Origin: Bugula neritina
Taxonomy: Eukaryota > Animalia > Bryozoa
Reading direction: 5' to 3'
Assembly: GCA_964035545.1 (NCBI GenBank)
Contig: CAXIUT010000057.1
Span: 54,609 to 74,982, forward strand
DNA length: 20,374 bases
Below are positions 1,103 to 20,374 of this stretch, one piece after another. Within the stretch, counting starts at the first letter, position 1. Every line of letters begins with the position of its first letter. Under the pieces are notes generated by a model that was given only the letters and a program-made list of their open reading frames with translations, had not been told where the DNA came from and searched no databases. Position numbers and translations under genes: made by a program.

Positions 1103-3566
1103 TCAGGCAAAATCATCAAGACGACACTCCTTACCTTCGTCCTTGAACTCCTCATCTTCTTCAATCTATCCTATTTGCTCAACTAGATAAATATAAAAAT
1201 ACGAAAAGAAGAAGAACGCACTCGTTTATACAACTTAGTTAACTTCTCTCCTTCCCACTGGGAATCAAATATCAGTTCATATTTGAAATTTTCCAAATTT
1301 ACAAGAGGAGCCATATGTTTACAAGTATTAGGGTAGTGAGTTGGAGGAGGATAGGCCAGATCGATAGTTAGTTTGAAAGTTTGTTCGATAAGGTAGGGGA
1401 TAATACGATTCAGGAGAGGGCAGCTACAGTCCATACAAGGATTAGTATTGATTTAAATGAGCCAAGGCTGAAAGTTACGATCAATCATGAAATCCAATCC
1501 AAAGATTTAAAAGTTATTCATTTGATGTTTAGGAGATATTTTGGTGGAAAACACTTTTAGCTGCGTCAGTACCCATTTCTTTCATCTTTGGCATGATTGT
1601 TTACTTGAAATTATATTTTTTGTTTTGAAAATTCGAATCTAAGTATCTTTGAAACTCATCATAAGATATCTTATTGTGAGATTAATATCTTCCATAATCA
1701 GAATATTTCACTTGAATAGAATCGTTCGTAAGATGAATTTCTGGGTCAAAGTTGTCGATATCGAATTCATAAGAAGATGTTCGAATATACCCTTCTTCAT
1801 ACCAATAAGCTCTCATTACTCCGAAAAAGTTAGTTATCAGCATAAAATGTCTGATATCAAACTTTCGATTATTGTAAAGCAAAGGTCTGTCAATATACAT
1901 CTGCACAATATATGTCTTCTAGTTCTCATCATCTTCTCTTGGATTTTGCTTAAGAATCCCATTCAACTCATATATTTCATCAATAACTGTAATGCCTTTG
2001 CCCTGATTTGAGTTTTATCCAGGTTTAACTATCCAAATATTTCTGGTTTTAACTTTCCGTCCTTCTTCTTCCTCTTCTTTCACTTCTTTTTGTATTTTCT
2101 TAGCTCTTCGTTTGTAATAGTCGACGAATCTAGAGTATTCAGAATCTTTGAGACCTTTTCTAATGTGAAAAGTCAAAGGTACATACTAGAAAAGACTACT
2201 TCCGATAAGTCCATAGTACTCTTTGAGGTTATAGAAGAGAGCTTTTTTATTTCCTAGATAATAATTATGTTCCAAATGATTATGAATTGTAGCACTCGAT
2301 CCAATCAATTCCAACTCTTTAGGATTCTTCAAGATAACACTGTAGAATTTAAAAGTGAAATCTCTTTCCTTGTCCTTTTCATACTTGTTCCAGTATCTCT
2401 TATAGATTTTTGCTTCTTCTGCACCCATCAACTTACGAATATACTGCTCTCTGTTGGTTACAATCGCACAGAACGAAACTTATTAGTAGTCTTGCTTTTT
2501 TTAGATGCATACTACTCATCTTCCCAATCCCCATCCTCTTTGAAACACAACTTTCGTAAAACTGATCTAGTCTGCCTTTCAAATATATCATTAACTTTTA
2601 ACTGAGTCCAGACAAACTAGCAATCAGGAGTTCTTTCGTCAGTTAAAGTCCACCAAAATCTCCTCTTTAATAGTCCTTTCACCATTGCTCCATTATTTCC
2701 AACTGCAATATAAGCCTTCAGTTTTTTAGGTCTGTTATTTATGTCATCATTCTTCAGTTCTAAATTTATAAAGATATTATGAGCATACATGTTTTTCCAT
2801 AAAAACTATAAGTAACTTTTCAGTCTTTTATCATATATTTGGTTATCATATATTTGGTTATTATCTTCTTTCACCTGCTTTTAGGTTCCTTCTAATCTCC
2901 TATAAAGATAATCTTCTGCCTTAGTCTCTCTCTTGAACACCCTTTTCGTGTCTCTCTTTGTTTCTTCTAGAACTTTTGAATCTTTCTGAGGAGAAAAACT
3001 TGTTAGTGAAGTTGTCAGTTCAATGAGATGTCTGAACTATAGTTCAATAACTTCATCTTAATGTTTAGATTTAGACTACCGAGTTGATCTACTTTTAATT
3101 GGAGATAGGACTTACTTATTTCCTAAATGTTTTAGATCAATTTTTTCTCATTGATTTTTTACTATGGATAGTTGAAGGAAAAGAAGTCCCCATCTTTGTA
3201 CTATTCTTACTATTACTGGAAAAGCTTTGAATTTTTTATTACATCTAAACCAAGTTTGGTCATGCATTCTGAAGAATTTTTTTTACGAGTCTAATCATAT
3301 GCTTTCAAGAGAGACTTTATACCTGTTTCTGCTTTATACTTTTTATAATAGTCTTCTTCGAGGACTCGAACATTAATTGGGTTTTCTAATTGCTAAGGTG
3401 AAGTAGGCAATTAAAGTACCATTTACCTCGGCTTCAATTTTTATAGAGGGTTATTAGAAAAAGCTTGTACTGCTGAACCAGACATAGATATTTTTCTATA
3501 CCTAATTATAGTAGGATTGTGCAGTATCTATTTGATCTACTTCACTTATGAAGGGGGTTATTACAT
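1103..3566 (-). CDS. Tubulin-tyrosine ligase family (TTLL) protein
   Basis: Motifs GNNGAMVKGLLKRRFWW, NHLEHNYYLGNKKALF, IWIVKPG[TAA=E]NSNQGKGI, QMYIDRPLL..RKFDIR, HLTNDSIQ, F[TAA=E]IFGLDFMID and PWLI[TAA=E]INTNP. 20-nt intron at 1183-1202 and probable 23-nt intron at 3057-3079. One unresolved frame change near 2440-2510 and one extra base near 1545. Start (3566, or in-frame 3485) is tentative. Confidence 0.9.
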
Positions 3567-3714
3567 AATAATTTTATTAAATATCACTAAAACAAAGAGT
3601 CTCAACTAAAAACACCTTATTCTCTTGATAAAACAACTTCTTTATCTAAGATTTTATTATATTCTTCTCTATCCACAAAGATAGATATTTATTAATAGAT
3701 ATTTTATTGCGAAA

Positions 3715-6700
3715 ATGATAAAGAAGAAAGGTCTGGCACCAATAACAGTTACTAAGACTGAAGCTAATAGTCAAGTATTAATGTTGGAAATGATGTCTAA
3801 GTTGATGATAGAGCAAAGATAATCCAATCGACTCCTCAGAAAGTTGGTAGGAGAACCAGAACTAGTGAGTCATGTTTCAGAAGGAGATCGGTCTAACTCT
3901 AAACCAAAAACTAAAGATCATATGTTCAGACAAACATCTAACTTTAAAGAAAAAAATAATAGAACTTCCTATCCTCTACATCTTATCCACGATCGATCTC
4001 CAGAATAGGACACTGACAGTTATGATAATAGTCAAAAAAATTCCTCGATAGTTTAGACAGACAAAAAAAAAGTTTAAGAGTTTCATTAAAGCTCTCCTCC
4101 AGAATAAACTCATAAATAAAGACAGAAAGGATAGGAGTAAAGACAGAAAGGAATGGAGTAAAGACAGAAAGAATAGGAGTAAAGACAGAAAGGAATGGAG
4201 TAAAGACAGAAAGAATAGGAGTAAAGACAGAAAGGAATGGAGTAAAGACAGAAAGAATAGGAGTAAAGACAGAAAGGAATGTAGTAAAATGGGGAGAAAA
4301 ACAAAATATAATAATTAAATGTTTTCTAAAGATAACTCTTCTTCTGCTAGAAAGGTATAAATAAACAAACTGCAAAGTGTTTTTGTTCCTGGTAAATAGA
4401 AAGTAGTATAAAATGTTCTTTCTTTAGATAATTATCAAAATAGATCAAAAGAAGGATAAAAGCTAAATAAAGACATGTAGCATATGAAAAATTACTCTGT
4501 TCTTTCAGAAATACTTCCTTATAGTGATCGCAGATAGATAAAGGTTAAAATATCTATTGACGATATTGCTAAACACTAACTCCAATCGAGGAGAAGATAT
4601 CGATTTATTTAAGATAACTGAAGAATGGTTGGGATTGGTCTACAGAGCTATTGCTTCAGTCTGCTGGAATATGTTTAGCAGTGGCCTCCTGAATTTCGAT
4701 TAAGTTAAAATTCTATTTACAGAAAATATCATCTTCAACTTCATCTAGTTTATGAAAGGAGTCAAAAAGATGGGATATTAGTATCTTAGATTGGAACTTA
4801 TCAATAAATAGGTCTAACTTCTAACAGTGTTTTAGACTTCCTTTGTACACAATACCCTCAAACAAAGATATAAGATCCCAATATTGCCCTACGTTCATAA
4901 ATTCCATCCATCGACAACAAAGGTAGAGCAAAGTATGATTTCATAGGTAGTATGTGTAAAAATAATCAATTAGTCCTTCGTAAAAATCAAGTTAAAATTA
5001 TACTCAATAAATAATGAGAGTCATTAACTAAATGATAGAAAGATCTAATCTACAATTCGAAGGGTTCAATACCTTCATGAGTGATATCTTTGGATAAATC
5101 TTTATACCTATTCAGTCAAGAACTAATAGAGATCCGAATAAAAAAACCTACTAATTAATAACAAAACTATTTCGAAAAAGTTAAATTCATATACTAAAAT
5201 ACTAATAGGAAGAAAGATAATAAAAATACTCCTAGATATACTGAACATTAAATCCACAACGGAATCTTTTTCGCAAATCATCGTCTATTCTCAGAATAAT
5301 TACCAAATGGCTCGAAGACTTAGATAAAGTAGTACTTGATGCATAAAAATAAGTAAAAAATGCCAAAAATGACTTTAAAAATCATTCTGGCTCATCTCTA
5401 CATCTCTATGGACAAGTCAAAAATGCCATTTTCAGAGCCATCAACAAAAACAAACATAAATTCGAATAAAAGTACAACTCATCAAAAATAGTGCTATAAT
5501 TTAGAAGTCCTTTTAACTCATTAACAATTTACCACTGACCCAGATCAAATCCATCTCAGCTAAGAACAAATAAGTGTTGGAAAGTATAGTATGTACCTTA
5601 AAAAAGCTATCTCTTCCTACATATGCAGTTAACTCAACGAACTCATTGACTTTCTTCTCTAAATTCCTTCCTCAGTTGATTAAACGTAGCTAGGAATCTC
5701 AGAAACAGAAGTCCAAGAACAAATTAGAAAAAGATCTTGATGATCTCAATATGGTCACCTGTAAAATATTCGATCTCCTACGCTGCAAATGCATCTCAAA
5801 AGAAAGTTAAATAGTTTATCTTCTCAAAAGATTAAAATAAAAAAGTGATGATCCCGCCGATCCGTTCAAGATTATGCGGGTAAAAGATAGACTCAATCAA
5901 GGAACCAGAGATATTCTAATCAATGCTATTATCAGCTAGGATGGTCTTGTCTGTTAGATACAACTTGGAGTCATTAGCAATGTCTAAAAAAAACAAGAAC
6001 TACTTGATCAGTATTAGCACTTCCTTTATTAACTCAGAAGAGCTAAACTGGGAGCATAACTGAAAGCGCATCTATCTGGTCTACTCTCGAACAAAGAGCT
6101 CTTTTCTTTTAATCATAAATAAAAAAGGATAACTAGTCTCCCTGCGACCAGATTGCCACATGCCTGTTTGACTAACTTTGCTTTAGTAGAAGGAACTAAA
6201 GTCAGTAAATTTGTTCGTCCTTTTATTTGTGGTTCTTGTAAACTTTTTTATTCGATTCCTAAAAGCTGCTTTTCTAATGTTAAATGTAATCAATGTTCTT
6301 AAAAGTTTTGCGGAGAGTGTCATTTCTCACAACTTAACGAATAATAAAGAAAAGATTTTGTCTTCTAGAATCATTATTTTAAGTGTCTGTTCCCCTTCTT
6401 AAAAAGATATACTTAAAGTAGTTAGCCTTTCCCTCAGTCTGGCTTTCTTATTCGGAGAAAATATCTCAAAAAATAACTTTTCTATTATAGAGTTATAGTC
6501 ATGAGAAATTAACACTTGAATTTTTAAGATTAGTTCTAGATAGATCTCGTTTATTCAGGAGTTTAAGATGGTAAACTTTGCAACAAAATAATAAATAAAA
6601 TATCAATCTAAGCTACAATGAAAGAAGGTAAAATTTATCTTAATTCTAAAGCAAAAAAGTAACTATAGAACTATCTTATTTATCAAATATAAATAACGCC

Positions 6701-8054
6701 AAAAATATAAATATTAAATATAAAATACAAAGACCTTCTTGAAAACTTTCAATAAAAAAAATTAAAATTTATCAATATTCTAACTCATCCAATCTACTTT
6801 GATGACTTAGTTCTTTTCAAAAAGACAAAACTAATCAAAAGATAGATTGATAGCTATAAAGATATTCTTTAGCCTGATACTCTATTGACCTACCTCAAAA
6901 TAAATAAAAGAGTCTTTATTGTTCAAGTAGAACTTCCAGAAGATCTTCTGCAGTAAGAACTTGTCAGACAAATCAATCTCCTTCGATTGAAATCCTTTGC
7001 TTAAAAAAAATATGACTTACTCAGCATGGAATTTAGAGGAGTTACCACATAAATGAAATAAATATTTACCACACTTCCTAAACAACTTGTAGTTTCCTTC
7101 TCTAAAAACATCATTAAACTGTATCTAGACTACTGTAAAATTTAAGATCTTTCTTTCCTTTAAAAATTCCCCTACCTCACAGTTTTCTTCATTAGACACA
7201 ACAAAGTTTCTTCTCTCGACCCAGTCAAATATCTAAAACATTTAAAATTGCTTAATTTTGATAGAAATTCAGTTAGTTCTTTGTTGCCTCTTGCTCAACT
7301 CGGTTAGATTACTATCCTAAGCGGAGCTTCTAACAACATCAATAGTCTAGAAGGCATTCAAAGTCTTAAAAAACTTAAAAAACTGAACTTATATCGTAAT
7401 GAAATAGAAAGTTTTCAGCAGTTAAAAAACCTTCCTAACATAAAAGAACTTTATATAAACACTAATCCTCTATCTGACCTTGAGAGCATCACTAACTTAA
7501 AAAAGTTATAATAAATCAGCATCGGTAAGACAAAGATCAAAGAGGTGGATTCTTTGAGATATTTTACTAAATTAAAAAAGGTCTATCTCAATGATCTTCA
7601 TCTGCCTCAAATAGGTCCGATCTTTAAAAACTTTGATCATCTCACTAAACTATTTCTTTATGATAACGATATCTAAAGAATGTAAAATTTAAGCTAAATG
7701 ACAGAACTCCTAGAAATCAATTTGCAAAATAACCATATTAAAAAAATATAAGGACTCTAAAACTGTGTCATGCTTGAAGTCCTCAAACTTAAAGGCAATC
7801 TCATCACTGATATCACTGGTATCAAATCTCTTTATAATCTCAGAAGACTCAGATTAATTGACAACCCTCTTTAAGATTGTACAGAATTACATTTAATCAA
7901 CAAAAAACAACTAGATTTTTAGTATTCAGAACCAAGTAAAGCTTGCAGCCCACAGCATCAACCATCTGACTCTTTCTACGAAAAATATGCTATTTGTCTG
8001 TAAGGTAAAAATAGCAGCAGTGGAAGCAATTCAGAAGATGGAGATTCAGTTTGA
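3715..8054 (+). CDS. Multidomain protein: charged heptad repeat - RelA/SpoT-like nucleotidyltransferase domain - Cys-rich Zn finger - ~12 LRRs
   Basis: ATG 3715. One frame is open from 5373 to TGA 8052-8054 and contains IFDLLRC, IMRVKDRL.QGTRDILIN, VC[TAG=E]IQL, EHFLYE, FICGSC..KCNQCSEKFCGEC and 22-aa LRRs (e.g. LQNNHIKKI[E]GL[E]NC). Joining the 5' part needs several frame changes between ~4480 and 5500 (candidate small introns, e.g. 5472-5491), so the 5' gene model is tentative. Confidence 0.75.
4117..4284 (+). repeat. Coding 21-bp tandem repeat x8 (ERQKGME / ERQKEEE alternating)
   Basis: Units TAAAGACAGAAAGRA(TAG|ATG)GAG at 21-nt spacing, forming a 42-bp higher-order repeat, in frame with ATG 3715. 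Confidence 0.95.
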
Positions 8055-8119
8055 TTATCAATAACAAATAGATACACTAATATTAATAATTTAGATATTT
8101 TTAAAAGCTTTTTGCTCTA

Positions 8120-9328
8120 TCAAGAATTGTTCAAATGATTACTTTTATGTTTGTTCAAAAACTTAAGAAACTGTTGTGCCATGAATTCATAGTCAGATAG
8201 TTAGTTATAAATCTGAGCTGATAAACGAGTAAAAACCTTACCTTCAAACTTAAAAAATATAGGAAAACAATTTACTTCTTTCAACATCTCGTAAGCTACT
8301 TTCACACAAAAGTCCAAATCAGATTCAGGAACCTAAACATTACTCATAAAACCAATGCAACGCTAGTCCTCAGTCAAAACCTTTGTTCCCCAAACCTAGC
8401 TCACCTTCTTAGCACCTGCCACTGCCAAACTGTGATTATAGTACTTGACAGCGTTATATCCAAAAGATTCAGAATACTCAAGTCCTTTTTTAACTGTCAG
8501 AAAAGCAGTAAAATCTCTAGTACCAGTTCCAGTAGTACTAGCGAGCTGGGCCTTAACCATAAAAGTTACCAGTGATGGCAGGTTTGATTATTTTAAGATA
8601 CTAGTCACTGAGATAGAGAAAAGCAGCATTTTTGGGTGCAAAAGACCATTTATGGAAATTAGAGAAATAAGCGTCAGGCTAAAGTTCCAATATATTGATA
8701 TATTATTGGTTCATTGCATGAGCTCCATCTACGAAGAGGGGGATTTTTTTTTATTTGAAGAAAACAACTAAAGATTCAATCGGACAAACAAATCCAGGAA
8801 CAGATATAATATGATCCATAACTGCCAACTTTATCTTCTTTGGATATGAATTCACAACTTATTCGACTCTCATCTGAAATTGTTACTATGACTGTAGATC
8901 TTACAACCGAAACTACAACTAAGTCAAATAAAACTTACATCCAGTATTGTAATATTGAACAAATCTCTCAGCCAGTAAAAAGTCTTACGAATTGAGGCAT
9001 AAGCTGTGTTAGGAATTAACACCACATCTCCCTCCTGCCACTTCATCGACTTTGCCAAACTATTTATAGCATCTGTTGCATTTTGAACCAAATATAAATT
9101 CTCCTTAGGACAGTTAACCTTACCAGCCACATAACCTCTCATCTCATTTATCATCAACTAAGAATCTACTCGAAACCATTGCTCAGTATTAAACTCGCAC
9201 TTCTCCTGAAGCTCACGCTGATAATCCAAAACATTTTTAGGACAATAACCGTAACTACCATGGTTCATATTGATATATTTTGGATCCACATAGAAGTCCT
9301 TTAGTCTATCCTTTCCAAATTTATCCAT
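8120..9328 (-). CDS. PLP-dependent aminotransferase class V (L-cysteine desulfhydrase / Egt2 / isopenicillin N epimerase-like), ~395 aa
   Basis: Motifs NMNHGSYG, VQNATDAIN, DHIISVPG, VDGAHA, SNFHKW (PLP Lys), WTGTRD and RLSAQIYN[TAA=E]. 20-nt intron at 8919-8938; one extra base at ~8527. Confidence 0.9.
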
Positions 9329-17359: not shown

Positions 17360-19922
17360 TCATGAACCACAAGCCAAACATTCCTCGTCATCTGCAGCTC
17401 CCTTCCGACGAAGAGGACAAACCTTCTCCTTGCTTTACTAAGAATTCTTTTTAAACTTTTTGTTCGTCTATTGAGGCTATTCATCTTCCAAGTAGTTCAC
17501 TCTTCTCTCCTTCATAGGATTGCCCCTTTCCTCTACCTCCATCTCTTCTTATTCACTCTCAATTATTTCTCCTGCATTTTTTAGTAAAGTTTATACATCA
17601 ACTGTAAATTTGATAGGATCAGAAGCAGGCCTACTTCTCAAATAGTACATCCCAGTTTTAAGTCCTTTCTCCCAGGCATAAAAATGCACTGAACACATTT
17701 TAGAATAAGATGGTTCAGCTAAATGGATATTAAGAGATTGTGACTGATCGATAAAAGGACTTCTTCCGAGAGCCAAGTTTATAATTTATTTTTGACTTAT
17801 TTCCCAAACAGTTTTAAAGATCTCCCTTCCTTCTTAAGGAATCTAAGTTATTTTTTGAACAGATCCGTTCTAAGCAATCAGTCTATTCCTCAACTCAGGA
17901 GTCCATAAATTCTAAATCAACTAAAATATACCTTCTTTATTAAATACTAGACCAAATTCTTGTTTATGCAAACAAATTCACCTGCCAACACCCGCCTAGT
18001 ATACACATTGGCAGTAAATGGCTCGAAAGTCTAGTTATTACCCAATATTTGACTTGTACTAGCAGTTGGCATAGGAGCCACTAATAAACTATTCCGAATA
18101 CCCACCTAGGCCATTCGAACTTTCACCTTATCCCAATCAAATCCACAAGCACTTGGCTTATAGTTCCATAAATCGAATTGCAAAAGACCTTTCGAAGTGG
18201 GGGAACCCGCATAAGATGGAAATGGACCTTCCTTAGCAGCTATTTCAACCGATTCAGTTACAGCTCCATAGTAAATAGCCTAAAATATCTTCTCATTTAG
18301 TGAAGCAGCTTCTTTGCTTTCAAAGGAAAATCCAAGAATCTGAAAAACATCAGCCAGACCTTGCACTCCTATTCCAATGGGACGATGCCTTAAGTTCGAT
18401 TTTTTTGCTTCAGGCACAGGATAATAATTCAAGTCAATTATCTTATTAAGATTTCTTGTGCAAACTCGAGCTATTTTAATGAGTCCATCAAGATCAAAGG
18501 AAAGAGTAGCTCTATCTACCAAAGCAGGAAGGGAAATGGAAGCCAAGTTGCAAACAGCTACCTCATCAGCAGATGTAAATTCAACTATTTCAGTGCAAAG
18601 GTTGCTTGATTTGATCGTTCCTAAGTGTTTTTGATTAGATTTCCTGTTGCAGGCATCCTTAAACAACATATAAGGTGTTCCTGTTTCGATTTGAGAATCA
18701 ACTATAGCCTGCCAGACTTCTCTAGCTTTGAGAGTTTTTCTTCCTTTTCCTCCTTCCTCATAACTTATATATAACTTCTAAAACTCCTCTCCCCAGACAT
18801 CAGGCAATCCTGGACATTAATTAGGACAGAATAAAGTCCAAGTACTATCTTGTGTAACTCTTCTCATGAAAAGATCAGGTATCCATAATCCATAGAACAA
18901 ATCTCTTGCTCTATTTTCTTCCTTACCTGTATTCTTTTTCAAATCCAAAAAATCAAAGATATCTGCATGCCAAGGTTCAAGGTAGATGGCAAAAGAACCT
19001 TTTCTTTTTCCTCCTCCCTGGTCGACATACCGAGCAGTATCATTGTAGACTTTTAGCATTGGAACAATGCCGTTAGAGACTCCATTAGTTCCTCGAATAT
19101 ATGAATCTCTAGCTCTAATATTGGATATGGAGAGGCCAATACCTCCTGCTGATTTCGATATTTTCGCACATTGTGATAGAGTATTGTATATCCCAGTGAT
19201 TGAATCTTCTTGAAGAGCGAGTAAAAAGCAACTACTCATTTGAGAATTAGGTAGTCCAGCATTGTAAAGAGTAGGAGTTGCATGAGTAAAGCACTTATGA
19301 CTCATCAATTAGTAAGTTTCAATTGCAGCTGCTATGTCCTTTCGGTGAATGCTAACAGCTACTCGCATTAACATATGCTGAGGCCTTTCTACTATCTTTC
19401 CGTCAACCTTCAACAAATAGCTTCTTTCTAGAGTTTTGAACCCGAAAAAGTCATAAGTGAAATCCCTTTGAAAATCGATTGCCTTATCTAATTCTTCATA
19501 ATTCTATTGTATGAGTTAGTAAATATTTTGGTCAAGAAGAGGAGCAGGTCTATCGCATCTATCTTTACAGAAGAATAATTGATCAGCCACATCTTTGATT
19601 GAACTTTTTGTCATCTTTCTGAGGTTATCAATAGCTATCCTTGCCGCCAATATGCTGTAGTGAGGATGAACGATATTCTTTATAGAAATAGAGGTACCAT
19701 ATATGCACAAGTTTAGGCTGAAAGGTTGTCAAGCTCAGTGGTTGTAATTTTATCGTGAACTCCAACTTCTACCTTTTGAACCACTAGATCTAGGTTGACA
19801 AAGTCTAAATTGAGTCCGAAGCAGAGTCCTTCTATTCTTTTCCGAACAATGGAGATGTCTAGAGGCTAGAGAGAGCCATTTCTGGTGACAACTCTGAGTT
19901 CCCGCTTGCTTGTTTAACTCAT
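17360..19922 (-). CDS. RNR1: Ribonucleoside-diphosphate reductase large subunit (class Ia), ~840 aa
   Basis: ATP-cone N-terminus, [60 protein letters not shown][E], [10 protein letters not shown] and C-terminal CLACGS-TGA. 20-nt introns at 19678-19697 and 17912-17931. Confidence 0.98.
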
Positions 19923-20129: not shown

Positions 20130-20210
20130 GTTGGGGTTGGGGTTGGGGTTGGGGTTGGGGTTGGGGTTGGGGTTGGGGTTGGGGTTGGGGTTGGGGTTGG
20201 GGGGGTTGGG
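20130..20210. repeat. Internal (first right-hand) telomere tract (TTGGGG)n
   Basis: About 13 repeats with one G7 variant, followed by non-telomeric DNA. Confidence 0.93.
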
Positions 20211-20268: not shown

Positions 20269-20374
20269 GGGGTTGGGGTTGGGGTTGGGGTTGGGGTTGG
20301 GGTTGGGGTTGGGGTTGGGGTTGGGGTTGGGGTTGGGGTTGGGGGTTGGGGTTGGGGTTGGGGTTGGGGTTGGG
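20269..20374. repeat. Terminal right telomere (GGGGTT)n
   Basis: G4T2 array running to the end of the window. Confidence 0.96.

Follow-up and report, generated by a model that had tools for sequence, protein, structure and literature searches.

The window analysed here is a stretch of 20,374 nucleotides of the Bugula neritina assembly GCA_964035545.1 (contig CAXIUT010000057.1, forward-strand positions 54,609 to 74,982). It contains a plus-strand gene whose predicted protein appears to join a divergent RelA/SpoT-like nucleotidyltransferase (NTase) core to a putative zinc module and an array of leucine-rich repeats (LRRs). We favour such a fusion, with a sensor-type architecture, as the explanation of the gene, and consider it moderately probable as a whole. 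As parts of the same explanation, the protein would be cytoplasmic, with about 1,450-1,650 residues depending on the choice of start codon, and the gene would belong to an undescribed family in ciliates that read TAA and TAG (TAR) as Glu. The domains would follow each other as charged repeats, a helical region, the RelA/SpoT-like core, a zinc module with four to six cysteines, a linker and an LRR array of the SDS22 type, with the following positions in the window.

3088 to 8054, plus strand: whole open frame after correction of insertions and deletions (indels), 1655 sense codons, with a TGA stop at 8052-8054.
4108 to 4299, plus strand: low-complexity charged repeats of the E-E-R-Q-K-G-M-E type, from the translation of the corrected frame.
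4600 to 5575, plus strand: family-specific N-terminal region, largely helical, from conservation among paralogues; the assembly frame is broken here by 1-nt indels.
5579 to 6125, plus strand: divergent RelA/SpoT-like nucleotidyltransferase-fold core, predicted from models of relatives, with a helix, beta-alpha-beta-beta-beta and helices.
6153 to 6323, plus strand: putative zinc-knuckle module, CxxC-x15-CxxC-x4-CxxC, from the cysteine pattern and conservation among paralogues.
6324 to 7109, plus strand: linker or middle region, with no Pfam match on its pieces.
7110 to 7880, plus strand: SDS22-type LRR array of 11-12 repeats of 22 residues, from the repeat count and Pfam.
7881 to 8051, plus strand: Ser/Asp-rich C-terminal tail, from the translation.

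The nature of the core was judged from AlphaFold models of two relatives, P0172 and P0126, which are ~31-35% identical to each other and had predicted local distance difference test (pLDDT) scores of 76 and 82, respectively, with 83-98 in the core. Both models presented a confident beta-alpha-beta-beta-beta core with helices on both sides. When 350,542 PDB chains were searched by Foldseek, the top 17 matches were all small alarmone synthetases (SASs; RelQ, RelP and exported SAS) for both models, with a best expectation value (E) of 8e-3 and a probability of up to 0.91, and RelSeq, SpoT, Rel and other NTase-fold proteins (Utp22, poly(A) polymerases) followed lower in the top 50. As far as the models tell, the nearest solved structures to the core are alarmone synthetases, and the RelA/SpoT-like fold, which the earlier note on this DNA had proposed to look for with these two programs, was the best structural match of both. 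Residues 260-331 of B. subtilis Rel superposed on residues 76-147 of the model, placing D264 on D80, the family Asp, and E324 on E140, the family Glu; we take D264 and E324 to be the catalytic residues of Rel. Alignments by HMMER and hhalign were weak and picked the register of this superposition, pairing DLLRCKC with DLLAIRI, R-x-K-N-R-L with R-F-K-D-Y-I, C-E-x-Q with E-x-Q and H-x-x-Y-E with H-W-K-Y-K. The SpoT-core hidden Markov model (HMM) also aligned family members in structural register, best for P0142 (E 4.4e-4 among 31 sequences). With RelQ, RelP and Rel the family shares the succession of a helix, a strand with the Asp, a helix, a strand with R-x-K-D, a further strand, a strand with Glu-x-Gln and a helix with H-x-x-Y, and the spacing from Asp to Glu is ~60 residues in both the family and Rel. 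We prefer RelA/SpoT over other beta-alpha-beta-beta-beta folds because the conserved Asp and Glu land on catalytic positions. Structure prediction and residue register speak for this fold, profiles do not, and it is probable that the core descends from, or belongs to, the RelA/SpoT-like branch of the NTase fold.

In the window protein itself, the Asp codon is found at 5772-5774 within KIFDLLRCKCIS (5763-5798, with FDLLRC), and R-V-K-D-R-L at 5877-5894 within FKIMRVKDRL (5865-5894). These are followed by GTRDILINAIIS (5901-5936, with GTRDILIN), by Cys-Glu-Ile-Gln at 5952-5963 within GLVCEIQLGV (5943-5972), where Glu is the TAG at 5955-5957 preceding IQL, and by H-F-L-Y-E at 6018-6032 within EHFLYELRRAK (6015-6047), where Glu is a TAA. 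Translation with TAR as Glu returned the peptides quoted in the earlier note, as well as its six-cysteine segment and 22-residue LRRs, each where the note had placed it, and its claim that the Glu of EIQ is a TAG was confirmed directly at the codon. The core motifs are above chance, as they are kept in four paralogues and 77 database clusters. The family consensus of 81 sequences strongly conserves Asp (D-L-L-R-C-K), Lys or Arg at +5, R-x-K-[DN]-R, Glu-x-Gln (C-E-[IL]-Q-L) and H-x-x-Y-E, so that a catalytic-type Asp with its basic residue (the equivalent of D-x-x-G-x-R) and the catalytic-type Glu of E-x-Q are both present. In the predicted fold, the core would retain a metal-binding Asp on beta2 with the basic residue 5 positions on; beta3 would carry R-x-K-[DN]-R and beta5 Glu-x-Gln, and the helix after beta5 would hold H-x-x-Y-E.

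Several observations weigh against the favoured reading. The PF04607 profile, judged by the Pfam gathering score of 27 bits, was silent on the window in a six-frame scan of the genome, on 18 stop-free core pieces, and on the stop-free full relatives P0172, P0164, P0126, P0142 and P0195, so that the profile match anticipated in the earlier note did not appear; Pfam overall gave no match on the 18 pieces, taken from the window gene and its paralogues. The family profile had no match among PDB sequences at E<=10. Comparison by hhalign with a gammaproteobacterial SAS subfamily and with 31 Campylobacterota SpoT synthetase domains gave non-significant P values of 0.045-0.13, and a local HMM of the gammaproteobacterial SAS subfamily was also non-significant. 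The Foldseek E values are weak (8e-3 at best), with TM-scores of 0.2-0.3. What was modelled is not the window protein but relatives sharing 26-35% identity with it, and both models have four strands, with beta1 missing. Glyoxalase-type beta-alpha-beta-beta-beta modules reach an equal Z, and ESM Atlas matches were mixed; a separate feature search there with a 32-aa piece was uninformative. Moreover, the family consensus has no conserved basic motif upstream of the Asp where the ATP-phosphate motif R-x-K...S...K (Syn1) would lie, and the Tyr and His of G-Y-x-S-x-H are missing from G-T-R-D-I-L-I-N of the window protein and from g-t-n-D-I-L-i-N of the family ([GT]-x-[RN]-D-[IV]-L-I-N). Finally, the one-gene model rests on contigs that are DNA-like in all compared runs, and the functional model is pure inference.

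These observations leave room for a core unrelated to RelA/SpoT: it would be a beta-alpha-beta-beta-beta module of a generic kind, VOC/glyoxalase-like or new, with helices on its flanks, its likeness in D...E-x-Q...H-x-x-Y would be due to convergence or chance, and the protein would be an LRR scaffold. We consider this unlikely: alarmone synthetases fill the first 17 Foldseek places for two models, the conserved Asp and Glu fall on catalytic residues, and HMMER and hhalign, though weak, agree on the register. Additionally, sequence identity is higher to Rel and CapRel (12-18%) than to VOC proteins (2-13%).

The sole PF04607 match of the genome, on contig C311 (L001, G000:C311:16844-20227), was set aside as a bacterial SAS gene that is irrelevant to the window. 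It encodes 327 aa in the standard code on a contig of 39% GC, which is a bacterial symbiont or contaminant contig, and it is 50-61% identical to mostly unnamed proteins with a Pfam RelA_SpoT annotation; its named relatives are GTP pyrophosphokinases of Gammaproteobacteria.

From RelA and SpoT the window family differs by having no Pfam match, no R-x-K...S...K, no beta1, no G-Y-x-S-x-H and no R-T after E-x-Q, and by a core that sits in a eukaryotic multidomain protein of ~1,600 residues. In both models, only helices were found where the Syn1 motif and beta1 would be expected. The motif order of RelA/SpoT proposed in the earlier note thus stands for Asp and Glu-x-Gln, which lie on catalytic positions, and fails for the supposed equivalent of GY.S.H. 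As the core lacks both the ATP-phosphate motif and the Tyr/His pair that would stack guanine, synthesis of (p)ppGpp by it appears unlikely, as does the (p)ppNpp-type messenger that had been suggested for it. Without the phosphate clamp, beta1 and the Tyr/His pair, GDP and GTP would be improbable as acceptors, and the core may be a pseudo-enzyme. A dead RelA/SpoT-derived domain could have a purely structural or nucleotide-binding role, within an LRR protein of the SDS22 type that might, for example, regulate a phosphatase or a ciliary or cytoskeletal complex. This would agree with the loss of Syn1, beta1 and the G-loop residues, and SDS22-type LRRs are typical protein-protein adaptors. Without a ligand or catalysis, however, it is hard to see why Asp, Glu-x-Gln, R-x-K-[DN]-R and H-x-x-Y-E should be so strongly conserved among the 81 sequences, and we regard a dead domain as somewhat unlikely. 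The same conservation argues for a ligand-binding or catalytic pocket in the core, which could bind ATP and transfer (pyro)phosphate.

The gene has roughly twice the length of the stretch 5373-8054 to which the earlier note assigned it. In the assembly, the plus-strand frame (index 2) at 5373-8051 has zero TGA, with 38 TAA and 14 TAG codons in frame. Short-read contigs from four runs, which are collinear with the window, DNA-like and without joints (no RNA run among them), were compared with it, and against these contigs (3-4 public runs) the assembly has at least 14 single-base homopolymer indels within 4317-8527, which break real genes up into overlapping frames. Relative to the window, 3-4 runs from different studies agreed on an additional A after 5467 and another after 5483. 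They likewise agreed on one base less in the A5 run at 5728, nine further 1-nt indels within 4317-8527 and a substitution of C to A at 6145. Two more compensating indels, near 6046-6048 and 6121-6126, are inferred from record lengths and homologue scores: the short-read record of 5859-6238 has 380 positions and 380 letters with 2 gaps, and between ~6046 and 6125 the homologue scores were 47-55 in frame index 1 and 12-21 in the other frames, so that index 1 would be the true frame in this part. Once indels are corrected, a single open frame extends over 3088-8051, with 1655 codons, 76 TAA, 31 TAG and no TGA, a codon expected by chance ~1 per 59 codons. The apparent start at 5373 results from assembly errors, and the true start codon probably lies between ~3130 and 3750. 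Because this single frame runs without TGA, the enzyme-like, zinc and LRR parts belong to one gene, and an intron is not required.

The genetic code was examined on the gene of the ribonucleotide reductase large subunit (RNR1), which lies on the minus strand of the window at 17383-19728 (Pfam Ribonuc_red_lgC, E 1.3e-60, one piece) and was aligned with 34 giant-virus RNR1 genes. TAG 18282 and TAG 18033 stand opposite a Glu that is invariant in 34/34 of them. TAG 18780 is opposite Glu in 21 and Asp in 9, TAA 18819 is opposite mostly Glu and TAA 19311 opposite Asp, and Gln is rare at all tested TAR positions. Relatives of the window gene also have GAR-coded Glu where the window has TAR, as in YELKR of the paralogue on contig C86 and CELQ of the metagenome scaffold L134. 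As the TAR codons of RNR1 align with Glu or Asp, these results support TAR as Glu (NCBI table 30 type), in agreement with the earlier note. The source organism is taken to be a ciliate that reads both TAA and TAG as Glu. The RNR1 gene changes frame near 17960-17990, a shift that a very small intron could account for.

C-terminal to the core, the segment at 6153-6323 reads CGSC-x15-CNQC-x4-CGEC, with LPHAC before it. The first CxxC, in the context P-F-[ILV]-C-x-x-C, and a second CxxC 13-21 residues on occur in the window gene, in the paralogues on C86, C231 and C51, and in L134, while the third pair is found in the window gene and C86. With two or more conserved CxxC pairs, the module of four to six cysteines is predicted to be a zinc-binding knuckle or ribbon; in relatives it gave weak Pfam FYVE/IBR matches (E 0.01-0.3). 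Stop-free C-terminal pieces matched Pfam LRR_4 (PF12799) with E values of 2.8e-11, 5e-6, 4e-5 and 1e-4, the best match (7308-7508) having 43.7 bits, above the cut-off. Our count of 11-12 repeats and the LRR_4 matches bear out the ~12 SDS22-type LRRs reported earlier. The array shares with SDS22/internalin-type LRR proteins (LRR_4, LRR_9) the 22-residue repeat, the pattern L-x-x-L-x-L-x-x-N-x-I-x-x-I and Pfam matches, but those proteins lack the fusion with an enzyme-like domain and a zinc module. On the N-terminal side, LIGRKI (5202-5230) and SILRIITKWLEDL (5284-5322) are both kept in paralogues, whose homology reaches ~330 residues upstream of the core.

The search for paralogue expansion that the earlier note recommended was carried out by DNA motif scans of the genome and yielded paralogues on contigs C86, C231 and C51, and a neighbour on C66, 16 kb downstream. 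The C86 paralogue has the layout of the window gene in one 1357-codon frame, and those on C231 and C51 have LRRs just downstream of the core. The C66 neighbour (L002:1482-4360; 1.8 kb past the window end) has a core with DDLLRAKC, IKNRL, CELQLG and HKLYELLR, followed by a TPR-like region supported by weak Pfam TPR_1/TPR_2 matches in one piece. Judged by sequence, at least three paralogues share the architecture of the window gene, and a fourth would have a weakly supported TPR-like tail. Like the window gene, the C66 neighbour is split in L002, over three frames (721-2037, 1482-2816 and 2771-4360). Protein searches of the genome with pieces of 32 aa and 59 aa returned self-matches only.

Outside the genome, a family profile (A1) made from a 74-residue stop-free piece of C86 and pieces of the paralogues was run against 1.84 billion representatives. 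It matched 77 clusters at E<=1e-3, 11 of these at E<=1e-10, which are all unnamed fragments from ENA, JGI or Logan and were confirmed by a local HMM across regions outside the query. L134, an ENA metagenome scaffold, carries a 1667-codon frame of the same architecture, with ~45 LRRs and in-frame TAR. Its database protein has Gln where the DNA has TAG and was therefore called with a table in which TAG is Gln. The database proteins of L134, P0142 and P0199 came from a table with TAG as Gln and TAA as a stop, and are truncated; most likely they carry Gln where the organism has Glu. In L134 and the database relatives, the Glu of C-E-x-Q is coded by GAR. Standard gene callers fragment variant-code genes, which is why the family has no Pfam model or named member, and our literature search turned up no publication that deals with RelA/SpoT-like proteins in ciliates.

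In the mechanism that we propose, a partner or ligand would bind to the repeats, which are LRRs in the window protein and a TPR-like tail in its C66 neighbour, and the zinc module and linker would restrain the enzyme-like domain until the array is engaged. That paralogues differ in carrying LRR or TPR-like repeats speaks for a modular sensor. As a precedent for the mechanism, CapRel comes closest: its zinc-finger-like domain stays docked on the ATP site of the toxic SAS (toxSAS) domain until it is bound by a phage capsid protein (PMC9712102); a zinc module is likewise proposed to restrain the enzyme-like domain here, and the basic residue at +5 of the family sits where CapRel has an adenine-binding Arg. 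CapRel differs in being a bacterial fused toxin-antitoxin (toxSAS tRNA pyrophosphokinase) of ~370 residues, with no cysteines in its zinc-finger-like domain and no LRR, whereas the window protein has both. A true eukaryotic counterpart, with an LRR/TPR sensor, no nucleotide-binding oligomerization domain (NOD) switch, an active RelA/SpoT-derived pyrophosphokinase that modifies a non-guanine acceptor (tRNA, ATP or protein) upon engagement of the sensor, and a zinc latch for autoinhibition, seems improbable to us; if it did exist, ciliates would have a new class of effector in innate immunity or stress.

Fungal NOD-like receptors (NLRs) offer a second comparison. The earlier note's statement that RelA_SpoT occurs as an effector domain of fungal NLRs is borne out by the literature, where an N-terminal RelA_SpoT domain shows the use of such effector heads by eukaryotes (Dyrka et al. 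2014, PMC4986451). Both systems combine a RelA/SpoT-type domain with a C-terminal repeat array, which in fungi consists of TPR, WD40 or ANK. The fungal domains, however, pass the Pfam threshold and always have a NACHT/NB-ARC NTPase between domain and repeats, whereas the window protein has LRRs for repeats and carries the domain internally. Walker A (G-x4-G-K-[ST]) is absent from the window protein, the C86 paralogue and L134, and no NACHT/NB-ARC Pfam match was found on window pieces or stop-free relatives, as the earlier note had it. Without Walker A, the protein is not an NLR or a signal transduction ATPase with numerous domains (STAND).

An immune receptor resembling NLRs but lacking a NOD module is nevertheless conceivable, in which a ligand on the LRRs would trigger a (p)ppGpp- or (p)ppApp-type messenger. 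A domain order of sensor plus effector, the exchange of repeat type between paralogues (LRR against the weakly supported TPR-like tail) and the expansion of the family in the genome and in metagenomes would suit it. The residues for the acceptor purine (G-loop Tyr, His) and ATP phosphate (R-x-K...K) are not conserved, a messenger hydrolase or receptor was not seen, with no search aimed at them, and nothing points to immune function, induction or diversifying selection, so we hold such a receptor to be highly improbable.

Eukaryotes are known to have RelA/SpoT-type enzymes in chloroplasts, as RelA/SpoT homologue (RSH) proteins, and in fungal NLRs, as effector heads. If the favoured reading of a RelA/SpoT-derived core is right, a ciliate family wired to LRR or TPR-like repeats would extend the fold to a new eukaryotic lineage, and would add a sensor-effector layout whose only parallel so far is bacterial, namely CapRel. 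The case is also an example of how variant-code ciliate genomes hide genes, and a practical warning that homopolymer assembly errors and database mistranslations with TAG as Gln distort such genes.

Other matches of the motif scans were rejected. A GYRD...EIQ match on contig C8 lies in a non-coding repeat, and L012 and L013 on C4 are chance matches. Contig C8 carries a 74-nt stretch in at least 36 nearly identical copies (e.g. L014-L041), spaced 40-100 kb apart in non-coding-looking sequence with low-complexity tracts on either side; this is a large dispersed or segmental repeat. Telomere-type repeats were also observed. Two (GGGGTT)n arrays of the same orientation occupy 20131-20210 and 20270-20374 of the window, with a 60-bp spacer between them, just upstream of the RNR1 gene and within a contig of 417 kb. 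Immediately upstream of the paralogue on C86, at ~1670-1750 of the reverse-complemented L098, there is also a C4A2-type run. The arrays could represent joined macronuclear chromosome ends or interstitial telomeric repeats.

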